From sequence record NC_027399.1: a stretch of 64,000 nucleotides of DNA, one strand, 5' to 3'. The notes below the pieces were generated by a model, which worked only from the letters and a program-made list of their open reading frames with translations, was not told where the DNA came from and made no database searches. Below are positions 10,586 through 56,445 of the stretch, one piece after another. Every line of letters begins with the position of its first letter. The stretch's first letter is position 1. A program made the position numbers and the translations under genes.

Positions 10586-10942
10586 ATGATAATTTTATAC
10601 TTTCTATGGATTAATATATTATTAGTACTGATAACTTCAGGATTTAGTACTACTGCAATTGTTGTTTATATTTTAAGTTCAGTGTTTATGATTATGAGAT
10701 CATTATCTATAATTTTCAGTACTGAATTAGCAAAAAAGAATAATGATTTTTATGTCTTTTTATCAGAACTCAAAGATGATAATCCAAAATTAACTAAAAG
10801 TAATATCGTGTGTTCTAATATAATACACTTGGTACTAATATTTGTATTTTTACATAGTTATATTGCATTGGGCTTTGTATTATTTAATGTTATTATTAGA
10901 CTTATCGAATCATATAAAATGGAGAAATTATTTAATGGCTAA
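10586..10942 (+). CDS. multi-pass membrane protein
   Basis: 118 aa with 3-4 hydrophobic segments. Confidence 0.55.
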   Translation: MIILYFLWINILLVLITSGFSTTAIVVYILSSVFMIMRSLSIIFSTELAKKNNDFYVFLSELKDDNPKLTKSNIVCSNIIHLVLIFVFLHSYIALGFVLFNVIIRLIESYKMEKLFNG

Positions 10943-26405: not shown

Positions 26406-27365
26406 ATGAGTAGTAGTACTTTATGGACAGAAAAATATCGCCCACTTACAATGGATGATTATGTTTCAAAAAATGACGCCCTTCGTCAAAAAATGGAAGA
26501 ATGGATCCGTACTGGTGATATTCCCCATATTGGATTTTTTGGTCCAGCAGGAACTGGTAAAACCAGTGCAATTGGTGTTTTACTGAATGGATTGGAACAA
26601 AACGGTCACATTGATATGGGTGATGTGACTATTCTTAATATGAGTTCAGAAGGTATGGATGCTATTCGTGAAAAAATCGAAAGCACAGCACAGTTATCAT
26701 GTTATGGAAGATACAGGATTTTTGTTCTCGAAGAGTTTGAAACTACTTCACAGCGTTCACAAGGTTCAATGAAACGTATTATGGAAGATTATCATGAAAC
26801 TTCTCGCTTCATCATTACCAGTAATGAACCACATAAAATCCAAAAACCTATCATTTCCCGATTACAAGTAATTAATATCGAAAAACATGATATTGACCAA
26901 TTCATGACGCGAGTACTCGATATCCTTATCAAAGAAGGTGTTGAACTTGATACAGAAGAAAGTATTAATACAGTACAGGAATACATCAAAGCATCATACC
27001 CAGATTTTCGTAAAACACTAAATGTATTGCAACAAAATGTCATTAATGGTAAACTTGTCCACATGGAAGATAGTATTGAATCTTCTGCAACGTACAGAAC
27101 CGAGATAGTAGAAGCACTGAAAAACGGTACTATTCGTGCAATGCGTGAAAAAATTGTACAAAGTATTCCAGAAGATGAGATGGATGCATTCTTTTCTTAT
27201 CTGTACCGCAATGCTGAAATGTTCAGTACTGAACCTGTTACTCTGATGAAAATCAAAGTAAAAATTCGTGATGCAGTTGTTAAACAAGCTACTGTATCAG
27301 ACCGAGAAATGAATCTAAGTGCTTTACTTTGTGAAATAGATTTGATCTGTTCAGGGAATATGTAA
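26406..27365 (+). CDS. 44: sliding clamp loader ATPase subunit (gp44/RFC-like)
   Basis: LWTEKYRP, GPAGTGKTS, degenerate Walker B FVLEEFE, FIITSN, ISR, YPDFRK.LN.LQ. Confidence 0.92.
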   Translation: MSSSTLWTEKYRPLTMDDYVSKNDALRQKMEEWIRTGDIPHIGFFGPAGTGKTSAIGVLLNGLEQNGHIDMGDVTILNMSSEGMDAIREKIESTAQLSCYGRYRIFVLEEFETTSQRSQGSMKRIMEDYHETSRFIITSNEPHKIQKPIISRLQVINIEKHDIDQFMTRVLDILIKEGVELDTEESINTVQEYIKASYPDFRKTLNVLQQNVINGKLVHMEDSIESSATYRTEIVEALKNGTIRAMREKIVQSIPEDEMDAFFSYLYRNAEMFSTEPVTLMKIKVKIRDAVVKQATVSDREMNLSALLCEIDLICSGNM

Positions 27366-51654: not shown

Positions 51655-52055
51655 ATGGAGGCGACTGTATTCAGTACTGAATCAATTGATCGTTGCGTAA
51701 TCAGATTCAGTTAGCGTAGTATTAGCTGGGACGCGTACTTGTGAGCCGCAACCACAACGTACTTAAAATCCAACGCGTGGAGGGTAAGCATTCTGTACTG
51801 AATAGCAGAAGGGCTACAAAAACTTATACTTCAAAAAGGTTCGGGAAGTATTCGTAATAAACCGTTTAATCGTCTTATCAGTACTATGAACAACCAATAT
51901 ATTTGTGGTGGATATTATTGGACTCAAGTAGATGATGTTATCTTTGTACGCTTTCTAACCAAAAGGTCAGATAATAAAAATGTAAGAAAATTTCAGTACT
52001 GATAGCTGGAACCTTACTATAGTAAAAAGACCTGATATGACTCGCTTAGGTCTTT
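51655..52055 (+). ncRNA. putative structured non-coding region (unassigned)
   Basis: No ORF over 60 aa; GC higher than flanks; stems CTGAATC/GATTCAG, GTAC-TTGTG/CACAA-GTAC, TTCTG/CAGAA, ATACTT/AAGTAT; TATAAATA at 51641; ends with hairpin AAAGACCT/AGGTCTTT. Confidence 0.35.
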
Positions 52056-52067
52056 AAATTATATAAT

Positions 52068-52145
52068 GCGAGGGACGCTACGCCTTAGTTTAGGGCTAAA
52101 TCGTAAGGATTGAGTACTAAACCGCCTTGAGAGTCCCAAGGCAAC
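52068..52145 (+). ncRNA. putative pseudoknotted small RNA
   Basis: GCCTTG/CAAGGC hairpin whose loop AGAGTCC can pair with 5' GGACGCT; internal CCTTA/TAAGG and TTTAG/CTAAA stems; follows TATAAT. Confidence 0.45.
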
Positions 52146-52258
52146 TTTTAATTTAAATGAATTTGTACAAAACACAAAAAGGTGATATAATGATTCTATC
52201 TGAAGAAGATTGGGGTGTTTATCCTAAAGACGAATTTGATGGATTTTAATAAAAAATC

Positions 52259-52288
52259 TTGAACAAAAACAAAATAATGTGATATAAT
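52259..52288 (+). promoter_or_regulatory. sigma70-type promoter for ncRNA A1
   Basis: TTGAAC-18-TATAAT. Confidence 0.65.
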
Positions 52289-52291
52289 ATT

Positions 52292-52422
52292 AGTACTGAA
52301 TGAGGATAGGTGCAGTTGGTGAGATACCGCATGAGAAATCATAGACACCGTAGAAAGCGAAGGGCTTGGTGAGCGACGGCAATAGACAAGCATAGTAGAG
52401 GCTTGAAGAACTCATTAGTACT
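52292..52422 (+). ncRNA. small RNA family A, copy 1
   Basis: terminal stem AGTACTGAATGAG/CTCATTAGTACT; identical 18-mer and 20-mer shared with 53021..53120. Confidence 0.7.
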
Positions 52423-52526
52423 TTTTTAATTTAAAGAATTATGCACTAGTTGTTTTAAATCAGTAAAACACCGAAGATGCAAGTACTATATAGTATGTCA
52501 AAATCAAATACAATAAGAGTATACAT

Positions 52527-53000
52527 ATGAAAGTCGAATTGGGAAGTACTATCAAAGCAGGTTATACTGTTTCAGTTACAACGTGGGAAAATGATGGAGA
52601 TAATTATCAAACAAATGACATTGTGGGTTTATCTAAAGAAGATGCCAAAATGTTTATTGATACTTTACCCATTTTTAAATCCGTTAATAGTAAAAAGAAA
52701 GGTCTTGGAAACAAAGAACTTAATATTAACCAGTACTTGGGTAAGTTCGAAGACCTAATCAATAACAATATTATCACAGTGTCATTTGCTGAAAAATATT
52801 TTGGTTATATTAACCCAAATAGTGATTATGATGAAGATGAACAACAAGACACGATTATTGAAGCATTGTCTGAAATTCTAGGATATCCAGTTGAATACGA
52901 TTATGGTTTTATCAGAGTCGTTGAAAAAGTTCAAGTACTCTACTTCGATGAAGATACCGTAATTCCTTCAGGTTTGAAAGTAGACACCAGTACTTTATAA
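52527..53000 (+). CDS. conserved phage hypothetical protein
   Basis: IKAGY.VSVTTWENDGDNY..G motif. Confidence 0.75.
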   Translation: MKVELGSTIKAGYTVSVTTWENDGDNYQTNDIVGLSKEDAKMFIDTLPIFKSVNSKKKGLGNKELNINQYLGKFEDLINNNIITVSFAEKYFGYINPNSDYDEDEQQDTIIEALSEILGYPVEYDYGFIRVVEKVQVLYFDEDTVIPSGLKVDTSTL

Positions 53001-53020
53001 CATATAAAATACAGAACAAA

Positions 53021-53120
53021 TACTGAATGAGGATAGGTCATTGTGACCGGATGAAGTGAAAGGCTTGGTGAGCGACGGCAAAACCCAACCGTAGTAGAAG
53101 CTCTAGGAACTTATTCAGTA
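53021..53120 (+). ncRNA. small RNA family A, copy 2
   Basis: terminal stem TACTGAATGAG/CTTATTCAGTA; GGTCA/TGACC, GGCTT/AAGCT and ACGG/CCGT stems; lies directly 5' of tRNA-Leu. Confidence 0.7.
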
Positions 53121-53140
53121 CATTTTAATTTAAGAATTAA

Positions 53141-53228
53141 GGCCGTATGTCCAAATTGGTAAAGGAGACAGACTTAAAATCTGTTGGTGATATTCACCTT
53201 CTCGATTCGAGTTCGAGTGCGGCTACCA
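53141..53228 (+). tRNA. tRNA-Leu(TAA)
   Basis: acceptor GGCCGTA/TGCGGCT, anticodon arm ACAGA-CTTAAAA-TCTGT, long variable arm, T arm CTCGA-TTCGAGT-TCGAG, encoded CCA. Confidence 0.93.
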
Positions 53229-53257
53229 AATTTATAGTACTTCATTAGGTAAACAAT

Positions 53258-53581
53258 ATGTGTACTGAAGCAAGAAGATATGTTTATATTTTGGTTCGCA
53301 AAGATTTAGAACTAAAGGATATTATTGTTCAAACTGCTCATGCTTCATATGAAAGTGCAAAAGAATTTAAAAATAATGCTGATAGAACATCTATTATAGT
53401 TTTAGAAGTCAAGGACTTATACAAACTAAATGATGCTAAAAGTTATTTAAATTCTAATGGCATTAATTGGACTGTGTATACTGAAAAATCTTTAGGATTT
53501 GGAGAAACTGCTATCAGTACTGAAGCACTCAATAACGAACAACGAAAAATTATGCGTAAGTTCCAATTATTGAAAATATAA
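53258..53581 (+). CDS. PTH2-like protein (second, divergent class)
   Basis: YVYILVRKDL....VQTAHA, IIVLEV, F.E...TAI...L..R..L.LL. Confidence 0.7.
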   Translation: MCTEARRYVYILVRKDLELKDIIVQTAHASYESAKEFKNNADRTSIIVLEVKDLYKLNDAKSYLNSNGINWTVYTEKSLGFGETAISTEALNNEQRKIMRKFQLLKI

Positions 53582-53594
53582 ATATAATAACAAA

Positions 53595-53670
<76 letters not shown>

Positions 53671-53675
53671 AATTC

Positions 53676-53772
53676 AACAGGTAGTAACGCTCTTAGGTGT
53701 ACATTAATATAGGAATAAGGGTTAACAGTACTGTACACAAACGAGTAACCCCGAAAGACCCGAAACCTGTTA
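53676..53772 (+). ncRNA. small RNA B (7-bp closing stem, possible pseudoknot)
   Basis: AACAGGT/ACCTGTT+A; GTGTACA/TGTACAC hairpin; loop GGGTTA can pair with downstream TAACCC. Confidence 0.55.
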
Positions 53773-53781
53773 AAGTTTTAC

Positions 53782-53832
53782 GGATGATTATAAATCTGAA
53801 TTGACAGAAACAGCTAAAACTGTTATTATCCT
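53782..53832 (+). ncRNA. 50-nt tRNA-like mini RNA, copy 1
   Basis: GGATGAT/ATTATCC, TCTG/CAGA, AACAG/CTGTT; covaries with copies 2 and 3. Confidence 0.75.
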
Positions 53833-53839
53833 ATTTTAT

Positions 53840-54024
53840 TCCACAATCAGACGTATATGGTGTAAGTTACGTCGATGAAATCCAGAACAAGATCTCTGGT
53901 ACTCTAGGAAGTGGTGAATGTTAACCTAGACGGGTTTGTTAATTGGACGATAAGCAATTAATACTTGACTAGCAGGTTTAAACTAGAGGTGACTGTCCTT
54001 CACTAAACTGGAAAACCGGGTGGA
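53840..54024 (+). ncRNA. small RNA D (~185 nt, multi-hairpin)
   Basis: TCCAC/GTGGA closing stem; GACGT/ACGTC, CCAGA/TCTGG, CTAGG/CCTAG, TTAATTG/CAATTAA, CTAG/CTAG, GTGA/TCAC stems; no ORF. Confidence 0.55.
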
Positions 54025-54079
54025 CTTTTAATTAAAAAAGTGTTGAACAAAAAGTTCAATAATGATATAATAAGTACCA

Positions 54080-54155
54080 ATGTAAGGCGTGGAACAATGT
54101 TTACATAAGTTACTTAGTAGCCTGTACGCCCCACGTCAAGGTAGCCGAAAGGCAA
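54080..54155 (+). ncRNA. small RNA C
   Basis: starts right after promoter 54043-54071; GGCGT/ACGCC or CGTGG/CCACG stem; GCC-GAAA-GGC GNRA hairpin. Confidence 0.45.
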
Positions 54156-54162
54156 GTTTAAT

Positions 54163-54213
54163 GGGTGGTTATAAATCTGAATTGACAGAGACTATTAAAA
54201 CAGTCACCATCCA
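54163..54213 (+). ncRNA. 50-nt tRNA-like mini RNA, copy 2
   Basis: GGGTGGT/ACCATCC, TCTG/CAGA, GACT/AGTC, then A and AATTTTAATTT. Confidence 0.75.
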
Positions 54214-54235
54214 AATTTTAATTTAATAGTTTAGT

Positions 54236-54379
54236 ATGAATAAAAAACAGATACATAAACAATATGATGAAATTGCAGTGAAGGTTTTTCGTGGTGAATT
54301 AGGTTATAAACCATCTGTTAAATCTAAATATTCAAAATCTTCTTCACTAAAGTTCAATCATAAAATAGAGTTTAAATAA
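54236..54379 (+). CDS. small basic hypothetical protein (47 aa, not in ORF track)
   Basis: open frame MNKKQIHKQYDEIAVKVFRGELGY...; weak RBS. Confidence 0.35.
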   Translation: MNKKQIHKQYDEIAVKVFRGELGYKPSVKSKYSKSSSLKFNHKIEFK

Positions 54380-54398
54380 TACTGGACAATAATATATA

Positions 54399-54863
54399 AT
54401 GAATATCACTAATGTAAAAGATTTTTTAGAATATTTTATTAAGAATACTCGTGCACGTGATGAATTAGAAAAGAATGGATTCATCCAAGGTAACGATTAC
54501 AGTAATTTCTTTTATAGTATTGATAAACATGAATATTATGTCGATGCAACTTTAAGTGATAATCCATATTATATAAAAGATGGGTATTGCATTGGATTTA
54601 CGTTTGAAGATAAATCAGTAGATGCACCAATAAACTTTTATGCATTATATTATAATAAAAAAGATAATATTTTGAAATTAGGATTTACTAGTGACATGGA
54701 TGAAGATGTTGTATTCAATTGTAACACATGGTTGGAACATGATTCATTCTTTCAAAGTACATTAATTCATAACTTTATGACAACAGATTTAGAGTACTGG
54801 AAAAATTGCATAGAATTACTTAATGTAATTTATAATGAACAAATCAAACAAAAATGGCAATAA
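54399..54863 (+). CDS. FQxS-motif family protein
   Basis: WLEHDSFFQSTLIHNFMTTDLEYWKNC. Confidence 0.7.
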   Translation: MNITNVKDFLEYFIKNTRARDELEKNGFIQGNDYSNFFYSIDKHEYYVDATLSDNPYYIKDGYCIGFTFEDKSVDAPINFYALYYNKKDNILKLGFTSDMDEDVVFNCNTWLEHDSFFQSTLIHNFMTTDLEYWKNCIELLNVIYNEQIKQKWQ

Positions 54864-54960
54864 TAGCAGGACGGTTCAGTATTTGGTAGTATGTTTGGCT
54901 GAATAAACGTGTAAAAAAGTGTTGAACAAAAAGTTCAGTACTATATAATTGACTTACTAC

Positions 54961-55034
54961 GTCCCCTTAGTTCAGTTGGATAGAACAACTGCCTTCTAAG
55001 CAGTAGGTCACTGGTTCGAGTCCAGTAGGGGATA
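54961..55034 (+). tRNA. tRNA-Arg(TCT)
   Basis: GTCCCCT/AGGGGAT, D arm GTTC/GAAC, ACTGC-CTTCTAA-GCAGT, ACTGG-TTCGAGT-CCAGT; CCA lies 2 nt past the discriminator. Confidence 0.93.
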
Positions 55035-55047
55035 TACCATACAATAT

Positions 55048-55071
55048 GGGAATAGTTAGAAGATATTCCCA
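55048..55071 (+). other. acceptor-like microhelix
   Basis: GGGAATA-GTTAGAAGA-TATTCCC+A followed by the same ATTTTAATTT trailer as the RNA genes. Confidence 0.3.
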
Positions 55072-55181
55072 ATTTTAATTTAAAAAGCGTTGAACAAAAA
55101 GTTCAATAATGATATAATGGTATTATAAAATGTTGTAATACTTAATATTAACTTTTAAGAAGATAATTAGTATCATACACA

Positions 55182-55273
<92 letters not shown>

Positions 55274-55331
55274 TAAAATTCAATTAAAAAAGTGTTGAAC
55301 AAAAAGTTCAATGCTGATATAATAAAAGAAT

Positions 55332-55422
<91 letters not shown>

Positions 55423-55430
55423 GATTTTAT

Positions 55431-55481
55431 GGATAGTTATAAAGTTGAATTAACAGCGACACTTAAAATTGTCACTATCCA
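55431..55481 (+). ncRNA. 50-nt tRNA-like mini RNA, copy 3
   Basis: GGATAGT/ACTATCC, GTTG/CAGC, GACA/TGTC, then A and AATTTTAATTT. Confidence 0.75.
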
Positions 55482-55540
55482 AATTTTAATTTAAATAGTA
55501 CTTGACAAAAATGTTCAGTACTGATACAATAAAGAATATT

Positions 55541-55618
55541 GGCCCTTTACTCTCAAGTGGTTAGAGAATCCGACTCATAATCGGTAGGCTCTGAGTTCGA
55601 ATCTCAGAAGGGCCACCA
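55541..55618 (+). tRNA. tRNA-Ile2(CAT) (lysidine-type; Met less likely)
   Basis: GGCCCTT/AAGGGCC-A-CCA and GACTCATAATC arm closely resemble enterobacterial tRNA-Ile2; own promoter TTGACA-17-TACAAT. Confidence 0.88.
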
Positions 55619-55637
55619 AATTTTAAAACATAATATA

Positions 55638-56345
55638 ATGAAAATACAATTACAATATCCATATAATCAAGATTGGGATACAGGTTCATTAACAATTAAT
55701 CCCGAAGGTCGAAGAACTGTTATTTTATATAACAAAACTACAAAAATCACAAGTAGTACTGCTTATGCACGATATTTGTTAGCAGTGCACAATAACAGAT
55801 ATTTAACTGAAAATGAAGAAGCTGACCATATTGATGAAGATTTCACTAATGATGATATATCTAATCTTCAAATTTTGACAATAGAAGAACATAGAGCTAA
55901 ATCAATTGCGAATGGGATTCAAGCTAAATATGATGAATTTGTGTGTAAAGGTTGTGGAATAAAATTTTTAAGAAGACATAATCAAGTTAAGTCATATACA
56001 AAATATTGTAGTAAAAAATGTTCTTGGAAAAATAATCCTCCACCAACAAAAACAAAAAATGGTGACACGACAATCGATTATGATAAAGTAAAAGAATATA
56101 TAAACGATGGATTGTCAGATACTGAAATTGCAAAGAAAATGAATATAAATCGCAATTCAGTACTAAATTATAGAACTAAACACAATATACCTTCTAAAAA
56201 ATTTGCTAATGTGAATATTTTAGAAGATAATATTGATGAAATAAAACAACGTTTGCTTTCTGGTGAAAAGAAAGTTGATATATACAAAAGCTATGGTTCT
56301 TCAAAAAATGTTTTTGCAAGATTTTTAAAGAGACATGGATTATAA
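55638..56345 (+). mobile_element. HNH homing endonuclease in tRNA cluster
   Basis: EADHIDEDFTNDDISNLQILT..EH HNH motif, CxxC..CxxxC zinc finger, two C-terminal HTH-like segments. Confidence 0.8.
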
Positions 56346-56354
56346 TAGAATAAT

Positions 56355-56427
56355 GACTCTGTAGCACAATCGGTGGTGCGATTGACTGTTAATCAATTGG
56401 TTGGGGATTCGAGTTCCTCCAGAGTCG
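56355..56427 (+). tRNA. tRNA-Asn(GTT)
   Basis: GACTCTG/CAGAGTC, GCAC/GTGC D arm, ATTGA-CTGTTAA-TCAAT, G73, no encoded CCA. Confidence 0.9.
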
Positions 56428-56445
56428 CTTAACAAACCAAAGAAT

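Follow-up and report, generated by a model that had tools for sequence, protein, structure and literature searches.

A previously undescribed family of probable structured RNA genes beside tRNA-Leu(UAA) in RaK2-like jumbo phages

What is encoded by two similar sequence elements that flank a single open reading frame (ORF) at the border of a phage transfer RNA (tRNA) gene cluster? The question arose from sequence record NC_027399.1, in a stretch of 64,000 nucleotides (nt) that was analysed as a whole and is called the window below. An earlier note, made from the letters of this window, had described the elements as a two-copy small RNA family with an invariant core; we refer to this family as RNA A. 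Positions 52000-53300 of the window correspond to 176000-177300 of Klebsiella phage K64-1 (346.6 kb, Alcyoneusvirus) with 100% identity in megablast, and the two RNA A copies form the 5′ edge of the K64-1 tRNA gene cluster, which comprises seven tRNA genes on the + strand (53141-56428). RNA A is a previously undescribed family of narrow phylogenetic range, and we estimate at about 0.85 the probability of a real structured RNA gene. The main features of the locus are as follows:

52292-52423, + strand: RNA A copy 1, long form of 132 nt (covariance model R1, 87.9 bits, E 1.6e-23)
52527-53000, + strand: ORF157, 157 amino acids, between the copies and outside the RNA (phrog_2290)
53020-53122, + strand: RNA A copy 2, short form of 103 nt (R1, 106.5 bits)
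53141-53228, + strand: tRNA-Leu(UAA), the first tRNA gene of the cluster

The two elements flanking one ORF were present much as first described, with offsets of 1–2 nt: the common 18-mer TACTGAATGAGGATAGGT starts at 52294 in copy 1, not at 52292, and at 53021 in copy 2. The common 20-mer GGCTTGGTGAGCGACGGCAA was exact at 52363-52382 and 53062-53081, and the TAGTAGA(G/A)GCT block lies at 52393-52403 and 53092-53102. With up to 3 mismatches allowed, the 20-mer had no further match in the window (0 expected; 0 of 100 shuffles gave any match), and no further RNA A copies were found there. The copies could be aligned end to end except for a 33-nt insertion in the GGT..ACC arm of copy 1; in copy 2 the same arm, noted earlier as variable, is a 13-nt hairpin with a 3-nt loop.

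Collections of phages, viral contigs, metagenomes and bacterial genomes were searched by BLAST and with exact-core patterns, and the candidates were filtered with R1. In these collections, RNA A members occurred solely in RaK2-like jumbo phages. Two copies each were present in K64-1, Muenster, RCIP0023, KP13-7 and phiKp_21, and one copy each in RaK2 and OU509535; further members came from the Salmonella phages 7t3 and SE_PL and from three uncultured lineages, L005 (equal to L044, about 360 kb), L009 (equal to L037, 366 kb) and L042. The earlier description as a two-copy family fits some Alcyoneusvirus genomes, whereas the other lineages carry one copy, whose counterpart in K64-1 is copy 2, the conserved copy linked to tRNA-Leu. 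The exact-core pattern found no RNA A copy in the bacterial-genome collections, and its remaining matches arose by chance in coding DNA of unrelated origin, most of it G+C-rich. Two looser patterns applied to the viral collection returned the same members and chance matches only. A 19-bit match in L053 was discarded, as it lies inside a repetitive protein-coding gene, and R1 with its filters off gave only noise (≤12.3 bits) on the tRNA regions of GAP32, CBB and BF, which are more distantly related, and on regions of fENko-Kae01 and T4.

The fold of RNA A was examined by a covariation test on a model-guided alignment with 23 pairs, in which 11 distinct sequences represent 5-6 lineages. Standard pairs filled 93.3% of the pair cells, compared with 21-42% when the partners were slid by 1-3 columns. 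Both-sided changes were seen in 11 of the 23 pairs, the covariation score was reached by none of 500 shuffles, and about 20 G-U cells were compatible with the + strand only. The predicted fold that the alignment shows is a three-way junction, made of a terminal helix (P1), a second helix (P2) and an arm in which a helix P3, a GAA/AGUAG internal loop and a helix P4 are stacked. Its parts map to the two copies as follows:

52292-52304, + strand: P1 5′ strand of copy 1, pairing with 52411-52422 (12 bp, one bulged G)
52309-52349, + strand: P2 arm of copy 1, a GGTG/CACC stem around the 33-nt insertion (52313-52345)
52355-52361, + strand: tentative P3 5′ strand of copy 1 (AAGC) and GAA; AAGC pairs with GCTT at 52401-52404 (RNAalifold)
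52364-52391, + strand: P4 hairpin of copy 1; stem 52364-52368/52387-52391, apical loop of 18 nt with TGAGCGACGGCAA (invariant in the family) at 52370-52382
52394-52410, + strand: AGTAG of copy 1, opposite GAA, then GCTT (P3 3′ strand) and a purine-rich junction strand ending in GAA before P1
52411-52434, + strand: P1 3′ strand of copy 1 (52411-52422), running directly into TTTTTTAATTTAA
53021-53031/53110-53120, 53036-53048 and 53058-53060, + strand: P1 (11 bp), P2 and GAA of copy 2, from folds including RNAalifold
53065-53068/53085-53088, 53069-53084 and 53093-53097, + strand: P4, its apical loop and AGTAG of copy 2, from the same folds

The terminal pairing of the 5′ and 3′ ends, proposed earlier for both copies, held throughout the family. 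P1 is a helix of 10-13 bp in every member and is built from three unrelated sequences, namely ACTGAATGAG in the Klebsiella phages, TATCAG(G)A in 7t3 and L005, and ACAGGAAGG in L009 and L042. Between 7t3 and L005, it differs by an indel of one whole base pair, and the base that is bulged in K64-1 copy 1 takes part in a G-U pair in Muenster and OU509535 and in a G-C pair in copy 2. P2 has the form GGTN/NACC, and its fourth pair covaries (C-G, G-C, U-A). P4 is a helix of 4-5 bp that occurs with four different sequences and has both-sided changes at five of its seven pairs. The presence of compensatory substitutions across phage lineages is what is expected of a generic structured non-coding RNA gene, and it bears out the claim of an uncharacterised structured RNA class, for which Rfam returned no match at E ≤ 10.

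These data also bear on a non-functional origin of the elements, as recombination cassettes or as repeat debris from a palindrome, AGTACT, that recurs throughout the genome. The P1 arms of K64-1 do contain AGTACTGAA, which was counted 57 times in the window against 0.67 expected, and the repeats mediated the deletions in RaK2 and OU509535 that are described below. However, elsewhere the P1 helix is retained with wholly different sequences, P2 and P4 covary, and the interior of RNA A is conserved between genomes otherwise without megablast-level similarity; the 366-kb L009 genome has no such similarity to any cultured phage except at the adjacent small RNA. We regard a non-functional origin as very improbable, and covariation has largely refuted it.

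The most conserved part of RNA A is unpaired. The P4 apical loop UGAGCGACGGCAA is unvarying across the members, and the conserved set consists of the 13-mer TGAGCGACGGCAA in this loop, GAA (invariant except in RaK2, which has TAA) and TAGTAG (UAGUAG in the RNA), on the 5′ and 3′ sides, respectively, of the internal loop beneath P4, and GAAC before the P1 3′ strand. The invariant 20-nt core of the earlier note is therefore narrowed to 13 nt of the apical loop, joined by UAGUAG, GAA and GAAC, whereas the first bases of the 20-mer belong to a covarying helix. GAA opposite AGUA beside a C-G pair is presumably the sequence signature of an S-turn/loop-E module.

Three other readings were rejected. 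P2 and P4 were inspected by eye for loop-loop kissing, and the junction strands for pseudoknots, and the complementarity was not consistent. The short ATG frames vary in frame and length across the lineages and the substitutions are helix-like, which disfavors a small coding peptide. A CsrA-type GGA sponge was dismissed, as the GGA motifs are unconserved.

The P2 insertion of copy 1 (52313-52345) was found to be similar to the P4 hairpin: TTGGTGAGATACCGCA can be set against TTGGTGAGCGACGGCA, with ATAGACA common to both, and a GAAA-capped hairpin lies inside the insertion. Judged from this similarity, the insertion resembles a decayed duplicate of the P4 hairpin. RCIP0023 has an additional internal duplication within the same insertion.

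The following signals were seen around the two copies:

52259-52288, + strand: sigma-70-type promoter of copy 1 (TTGAAC, 18-nt spacer, TATAAT, TG-extended -10)
52981-53010, + strand: weak promoter-like site for copy 2, a consensus match only (TAGACA, 18-nt spacer, TAAAAT), 10 nt upstream of the copy
53123-53133, + strand: common 3′ flank motif ATTTTAATTTAA after copy 2

Copy 1 has the TTGAAC/TATAAT promoter of its own that had been reported for it. The copy begins 4 nt 3′ of this promoter, and the predicted start lies at, or at most 3 nt from, the first base of P1. Because the promoter stands at an equal distance from P1 across the lineages (4-7 nt 5′ of it in K64-1, 7t3, L005, L009 and L042), the transcript is predicted to begin at P1. 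For copy 2, excision from the ORF157 transcript is an alternative to the weak promoter-like site. In L009 (about 2930-2965) and L042 (about 738-772), the spacer of the RNA A promoter was seen to be a perfect inverted repeat, GGGACAAAA..TTTTGTCC, which overlaps the -35 and abuts the -10 element and may be an operator.

The window contains a series of cassettes between 52000 and 55700, in each of which a near-identical promoter AAAAAGTGTTGAACAAAAAGTTCA..TGATATAAT precedes an RNA gene, followed by a hairpin and ..AAATTTTAATTTAA; on the + strand, TTTAATTTAA was counted 6 times from 52147 to 55494. The copy 1 promoter carries the AAAAA..TTGAACAAAAA..TGATATAAT cassette that is common to the promoters of tRNA-Arg and both tRNA-Ser genes. 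The 3′ flank TTTTAATTTAA is common to copy 1, copy 2 and the neighbouring tRNA and small-RNA units, and is probably a terminator or processing tract. Since the copy 1 promoter and both 3′ flanks are of the cassette type, RNA A looks like a further RNA gene unit of the tRNA cluster, and within the cassette scheme its P1 takes the place of the hairpin.

The predicted start at P1 also bears on whether RNA A is a self-cleaving ribozyme that separates the units of a polycistronic RNA. Such a ribozyme could be compact, with a conserved core in the junction, as observed here, and copy 2 does lie between an mRNA and a tRNA. However, the promoter sets the start at P1 in five lineages, so that nothing would remain upstream for a ribozyme to remove, and no known ribozyme class was matched in Rfam. 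We find this explanation scarcely credible.

A ligand-binding aptamer, either a riboswitch whose P1 doubles as a terminator stem or a small-molecule sponge, was also considered. The three-way junction, the purine-rich invariant junction strands and the peripheral arm of variable length would suit an aptamer, and P1 of copy 1 runs straight into T6. However, no riboswitch of Rfam was matched, and in most lineages a separate expression platform is missing and the T-run is weak. The element downstream, which in a riboswitch would be the regulated one, varies between a protein gene, a tRNA and a tRNA-like RNA: it is ORF157 for copy 1, tRNA-Leu for copy 2 and the RaK2 copy, and a cloverleaf RNA (RNA B, described below) in 7t3, L005, L009 and L042. 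An aptamer is thus quite improbable.

RNA A lies 5′ of tRNA-Leu(UAA), on the same strand, in every lineage, including 7t3, L005, L009 and L042. In K64-1, copy 2 ends 18 nt before this gene, in line with the earlier statement that it runs into tRNA-Leu. The position invites a different explanation, in which RNA A is a cis-acting 5′ leader and P1, at the 5′ end of the transcript, protects or organises the precursor of tRNA-Leu(UAA), and of RNA B where it is present. P1 would then fix the processing sites and the yield, and the released RNA would be a by-product. The constant place directly 5′ of tRNA-Leu(UAA) agrees with such a leader, as does a promoter that makes P1 the 5′ end. Further agreement comes from Munch (L142 478-512) and fENko-Kae01 (L016 6010-6045), in which the core is gone and the promoter is followed by a P1-like hairpin with a 9-nt loop. 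The retention of this hairpin in place suggests that the hairpin itself is needed, and a hairpin at the 5′ end of the transcript may have a role of its own. However, a protective stem leaves the 13 invariant loop bases and the invariant junction bases unaccounted for, copy 1 of K64-1 precedes a T-run and a protein gene and no tRNA, and in Munch and fENko-Kae01 the core was lost without loss of the tRNA. We consider the leader unlikely overall, although it deserves to be taken seriously.

Loss of one RNA A copy was seen in RaK2 and OU509535:

L002 2008-2140: single hybrid RNA A copy of RaK2, with the crossover within or after the invariant core
L128 893-1025: single RNA A copy of OU509535, with the crossover in the P1 3′ strand

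Because these crossover points differ and ORF157 is missing from both genomes, we read them as two independent deletions by recombination between direct repeats. ORF157 is missing where a single copy remains, and from most RNA A-bearing genomes. It is acidic and had no Pfam match, its only assignment was to the uncharacterised phage family phrog_2290, its closest relatives are without a name, and its Atlas model is of low confidence. A role of ORF157 as a toxin or a partner of RNA A was rejected because it has no Pfam match and is missing from most RNA A genomes. The BLAST comparison showed that PHA46 is likewise without the RNA A part. Since the core was lost in Munch and fENko-Kae01 and one copy was lost in RaK2 and OU509535, RNA A is, as far as these genomes indicate, accessory and dispensable. 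As natural core deletions, Munch and fENko-Kae01 could serve as controls.

What could an accessory RNA with these properties do? Invariant, purine-rich, single-stranded surfaces presented on variable helices suggest macromolecular recognition. We tentatively prefer the reading, to which we give somewhat less than an even chance, that RNA A works as a trans-acting scaffold or decoy, with invariant loops that bind a putative conserved protein. The earlier note had proposed the core as a protein-binding or catalytic site, and it remains a putative one. According to this proposal, RNA A would be transcribed independently from a host-type (sigma-70) promoter, with the start at P1, as an RNA of about 105-135 nt. 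It would be released as a discrete, nuclease-resistant molecule whose 5′ end comes from initiation and whose 3′ end comes from termination or an RNase E cut in the A/U tract, or from an RNase P cut at tRNA-Leu. The sealed 5′-triphosphate end and the closed P1 should stabilise it. The invariant single-stranded loops would then dock either a phage protein or one that is conserved in Klebsiella, Salmonella and related hosts. The docking protein would most plausibly come from the translation or RNA-processing machinery, and the function would be accessory and non-essential. The neighbourhood of RNA A, with tRNAs and a PTH2-like hydrolase, is related to translation.

A narrower form of the trans-acting reading would make RNA A a free-standing decoy or aptamer that captures a conserved host factor, either a ribosomal or RNA-processing protein, which would suit a layout like that of 5S rRNA, or an anti-phage defence component or signal. 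We hold this form to be doubtful. If it were true, RNA A would be an RNA-based device for takeover or counter-defence, and its being accessory, duplicated in some phages and lost in others would be explained.

Equally doubtful is a base-pairing regulatory RNA, in which the invariant apical loop would serve as the seed for pairing or kissing with a conserved transcript of the host or the phage. The 13-nt loop, exposed and invariant on a variable stem, does have the form typical of antisense seed loops. However, the loop is purine- and G/C-rich and the genome is A/T-rich, and no pairing target for the loop in the 64-kb window was better than those of shuffled loops (best non-self duplex -16.8 kcal/mol; shuffled loops -15.3 to -21.2). 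The E. coli rrn operon gave only chance matches of up to 11 nt in BLAST, for similarity as well as complementarity.

Several observations weigh against RNA A as a structured, trans-acting RNA gene. The cis role in the tRNA-Leu precursor fits the conserved position equally well. P3 (AAGC/GCTT, from RNAalifold) has zero covariation and an uncertain register; both P3 and the loop-E/S-turn reading rest on invariant bases and lie beyond the covariation check, in the latter case because the GAA/AGUAG bases do not vary. The folding z-scores of the copies are only about -2. The RaK2 copy has two mismatches in P1 and a change of GAA to TAA (UAA in the RNA), so selection has been relaxed in at least one lineage. 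Finally, the literature yielded no transcriptome for any RaK2-like phage of Klebsiella or Salmonella.

Ever since T4, phage tRNA clusters have been known to hold small stable RNAs that were never explained, and RNA A is an independent family of this kind. Its fold is defined and supported by covariation, and its invariant surface is sharply delimited. Natural controls are at hand in the core-less Munch and fENko-Kae01, the decaying RaK2 copy and the phages with one or two copies. With these controls and the defined fold, the old question can be put to the test in Klebsiella and Salmonella phages that grow in culture.

In the non-Klebsiella lineages, the promoter is followed by RNA A, then by an 80-nt cloverleaf termed RNA B, and then by tRNA-Leu(UAA). 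RNA B (~80 nt) was located at 3079-3165 in L009, at about 3083-3165 in L001 and at about 888-970 in L042; in the K64-1 record it lies at 195176-195242, outside the window, and RNA A and RNA B are separable units. In RNA B, an acceptor-like stem of 6 bp is combined with a D-like arm, a further arm whose loop has 15 nt and a T-like arm whose loop has 9 nt. The K64-1 sequence shares 95.5% identity with RNA B of genomes that cannot otherwise be aligned with K64-1, and neither ARAGORN nor Rfam called it a tRNA.

Candidates for additional small RNAs with cassette-type flanks and no Rfam match were seen at 52066-52150, about 53830-54030 and about 54072-54226. The first of them, which is conserved in RaK2, comes with a TATAAT of its own and with a terminator at 52124-52142. 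The RefSeq record annotates the tRNA region with “hypothetical proteins” of 20-40 amino acids, which are probably spurious. RaK2-like jumbo phages thus appear to hold an island of small-RNA genes that current annotations fill with spurious ORFs of this size. Just 3′ of tRNA-Leu, the ORF at 53258-53581 matches the peptidyl-tRNA hydrolase PTH2 (Pfam E 5e-6, above the curated cut-off) and is a translation-related gene within the tRNA cluster.

The AGTACT palindrome was itself unusually frequent, with 157 sites in 64 kb compared with about 29 expected, or 8 times the median of hexamers of the same composition. Its extended form TTCAGTACTGAA was present 12 times against 0.1 expected. The sites, examples of which lie at 10715-10726, 27222-27233 and 51670-51681, occur in both orientations, mostly in coding sequence and in several reading frames. 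Enrichment was also found in the 7t3, fENko-Kae01, GAP32, CBB and BF loci (among L001, L005, L009 and L016-L019). The excess resembles a signal at the level of DNA that is common to the whole phage clade; nothing on this over-representation was found in the literature.

How does RNA A compare with known RNAs? At the gathering threshold, Rfam 15 found tRNAs only in the whole window. At E ≤ 10, no family match fell on either copy in the window, the 1.35-kb region or two slices of ~112 nt (53015-53126; L009 2965-3080), and the sole overlap in the L009 slice was an 11-bit chance match to a microRNA. The check for a known riboswitch or ribozyme that the earlier note had called for was thus negative, and known riboswitches, ribozymes, phage and bacterial small RNAs, tRNA-like families and YrlA were ruled out for RNA A by the lack of an Rfam match. 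Nothing on small RNAs of RaK2-like phages was found in the literature; the non-coding RNAs of PA5oct were not compared with RNA A. A type III antitoxin RNA, which has tandem repeats of ~35-45 nt immediately upstream of a ToxN-type endoribonuclease gene, was also rejected, as the RNA A copies are 103-132 nt long, non-tandem and, in most lineages, present without ORF157.

RNA A was compared by eye with the 5S rRNA of E. coli (L129 5057-5176). It is similar in size and likewise has a three-way junction closed by a 5′/3′ helix; its 3′ arm contains a junction-proximal helix, an AGUA-type (loop-E/S-turn-like) loop and a helix with hairpin, and GAAC precedes the P1 3′ strand. In contrast, a hairpin of 13 nt makes up its 5′ arm, where loop C and helix III have no counterpart. 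Membership in the 5S family (RF00001) was rejected, because cmscan at E ≤ 10 on the two slices of ~112 nt gave no 5S match. Since the Rfam 5S model fails to match, the likeness is an architectural lead only.

The precedent of T4 rnaC and rnaD, cited in the earlier note, stands for the genomic context but not for homology. Like rnaC (species 1) and rnaD (species 2), the RNA A copies of K64-1 are a pair of non-coding RNAs of ~120-140 nt in a phage tRNA cluster, on the tRNA strand. However, rnaC and rnaD follow tRNA-Arg at the 3′ end of their cluster, whereas RNA A has a promoter of its own and stands at the 5′ end, and rnaC ends in a tRNA-like T-arm, which RNA A does not have. Since R1 found no match in T4 69500-74500 at E ≤ 10, by default or with filters off, the parallel is one of context only, and no common motifs were seen by eye. 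The function of rnaC and rnaD is still unexplained (PMC3014915, PMC9697503).

With regard to fold, RNA A can also be set beside another group of small RNAs. Y RNAs and the bacterial YrlA-type RNAs are small, have a long 5′/3′ closing stem and a conserved unpaired platform for protein, and occur near tRNA-like modules. RNA A shares the closing stem and the conserved unpaired elements, and the cloverleaf RNA B is next to it in most lineages; it differs in showing no evident Ro-binding helix signature and no Rfam match. With regard to the flanks, the closest resemblance is to the PeSL promoter/stem-loop cassettes of T4-type phages, which are regulatory DNA modules around protein genes. The RNA genes of K64-1 are similarly flanked by near-identical promoters and T-rich 3′ modules, and repeats mediated the deletion of ORF157. 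In contrast to PeSL cassettes, the conserved and covarying part of RNA A is the transcribed RNA itself.

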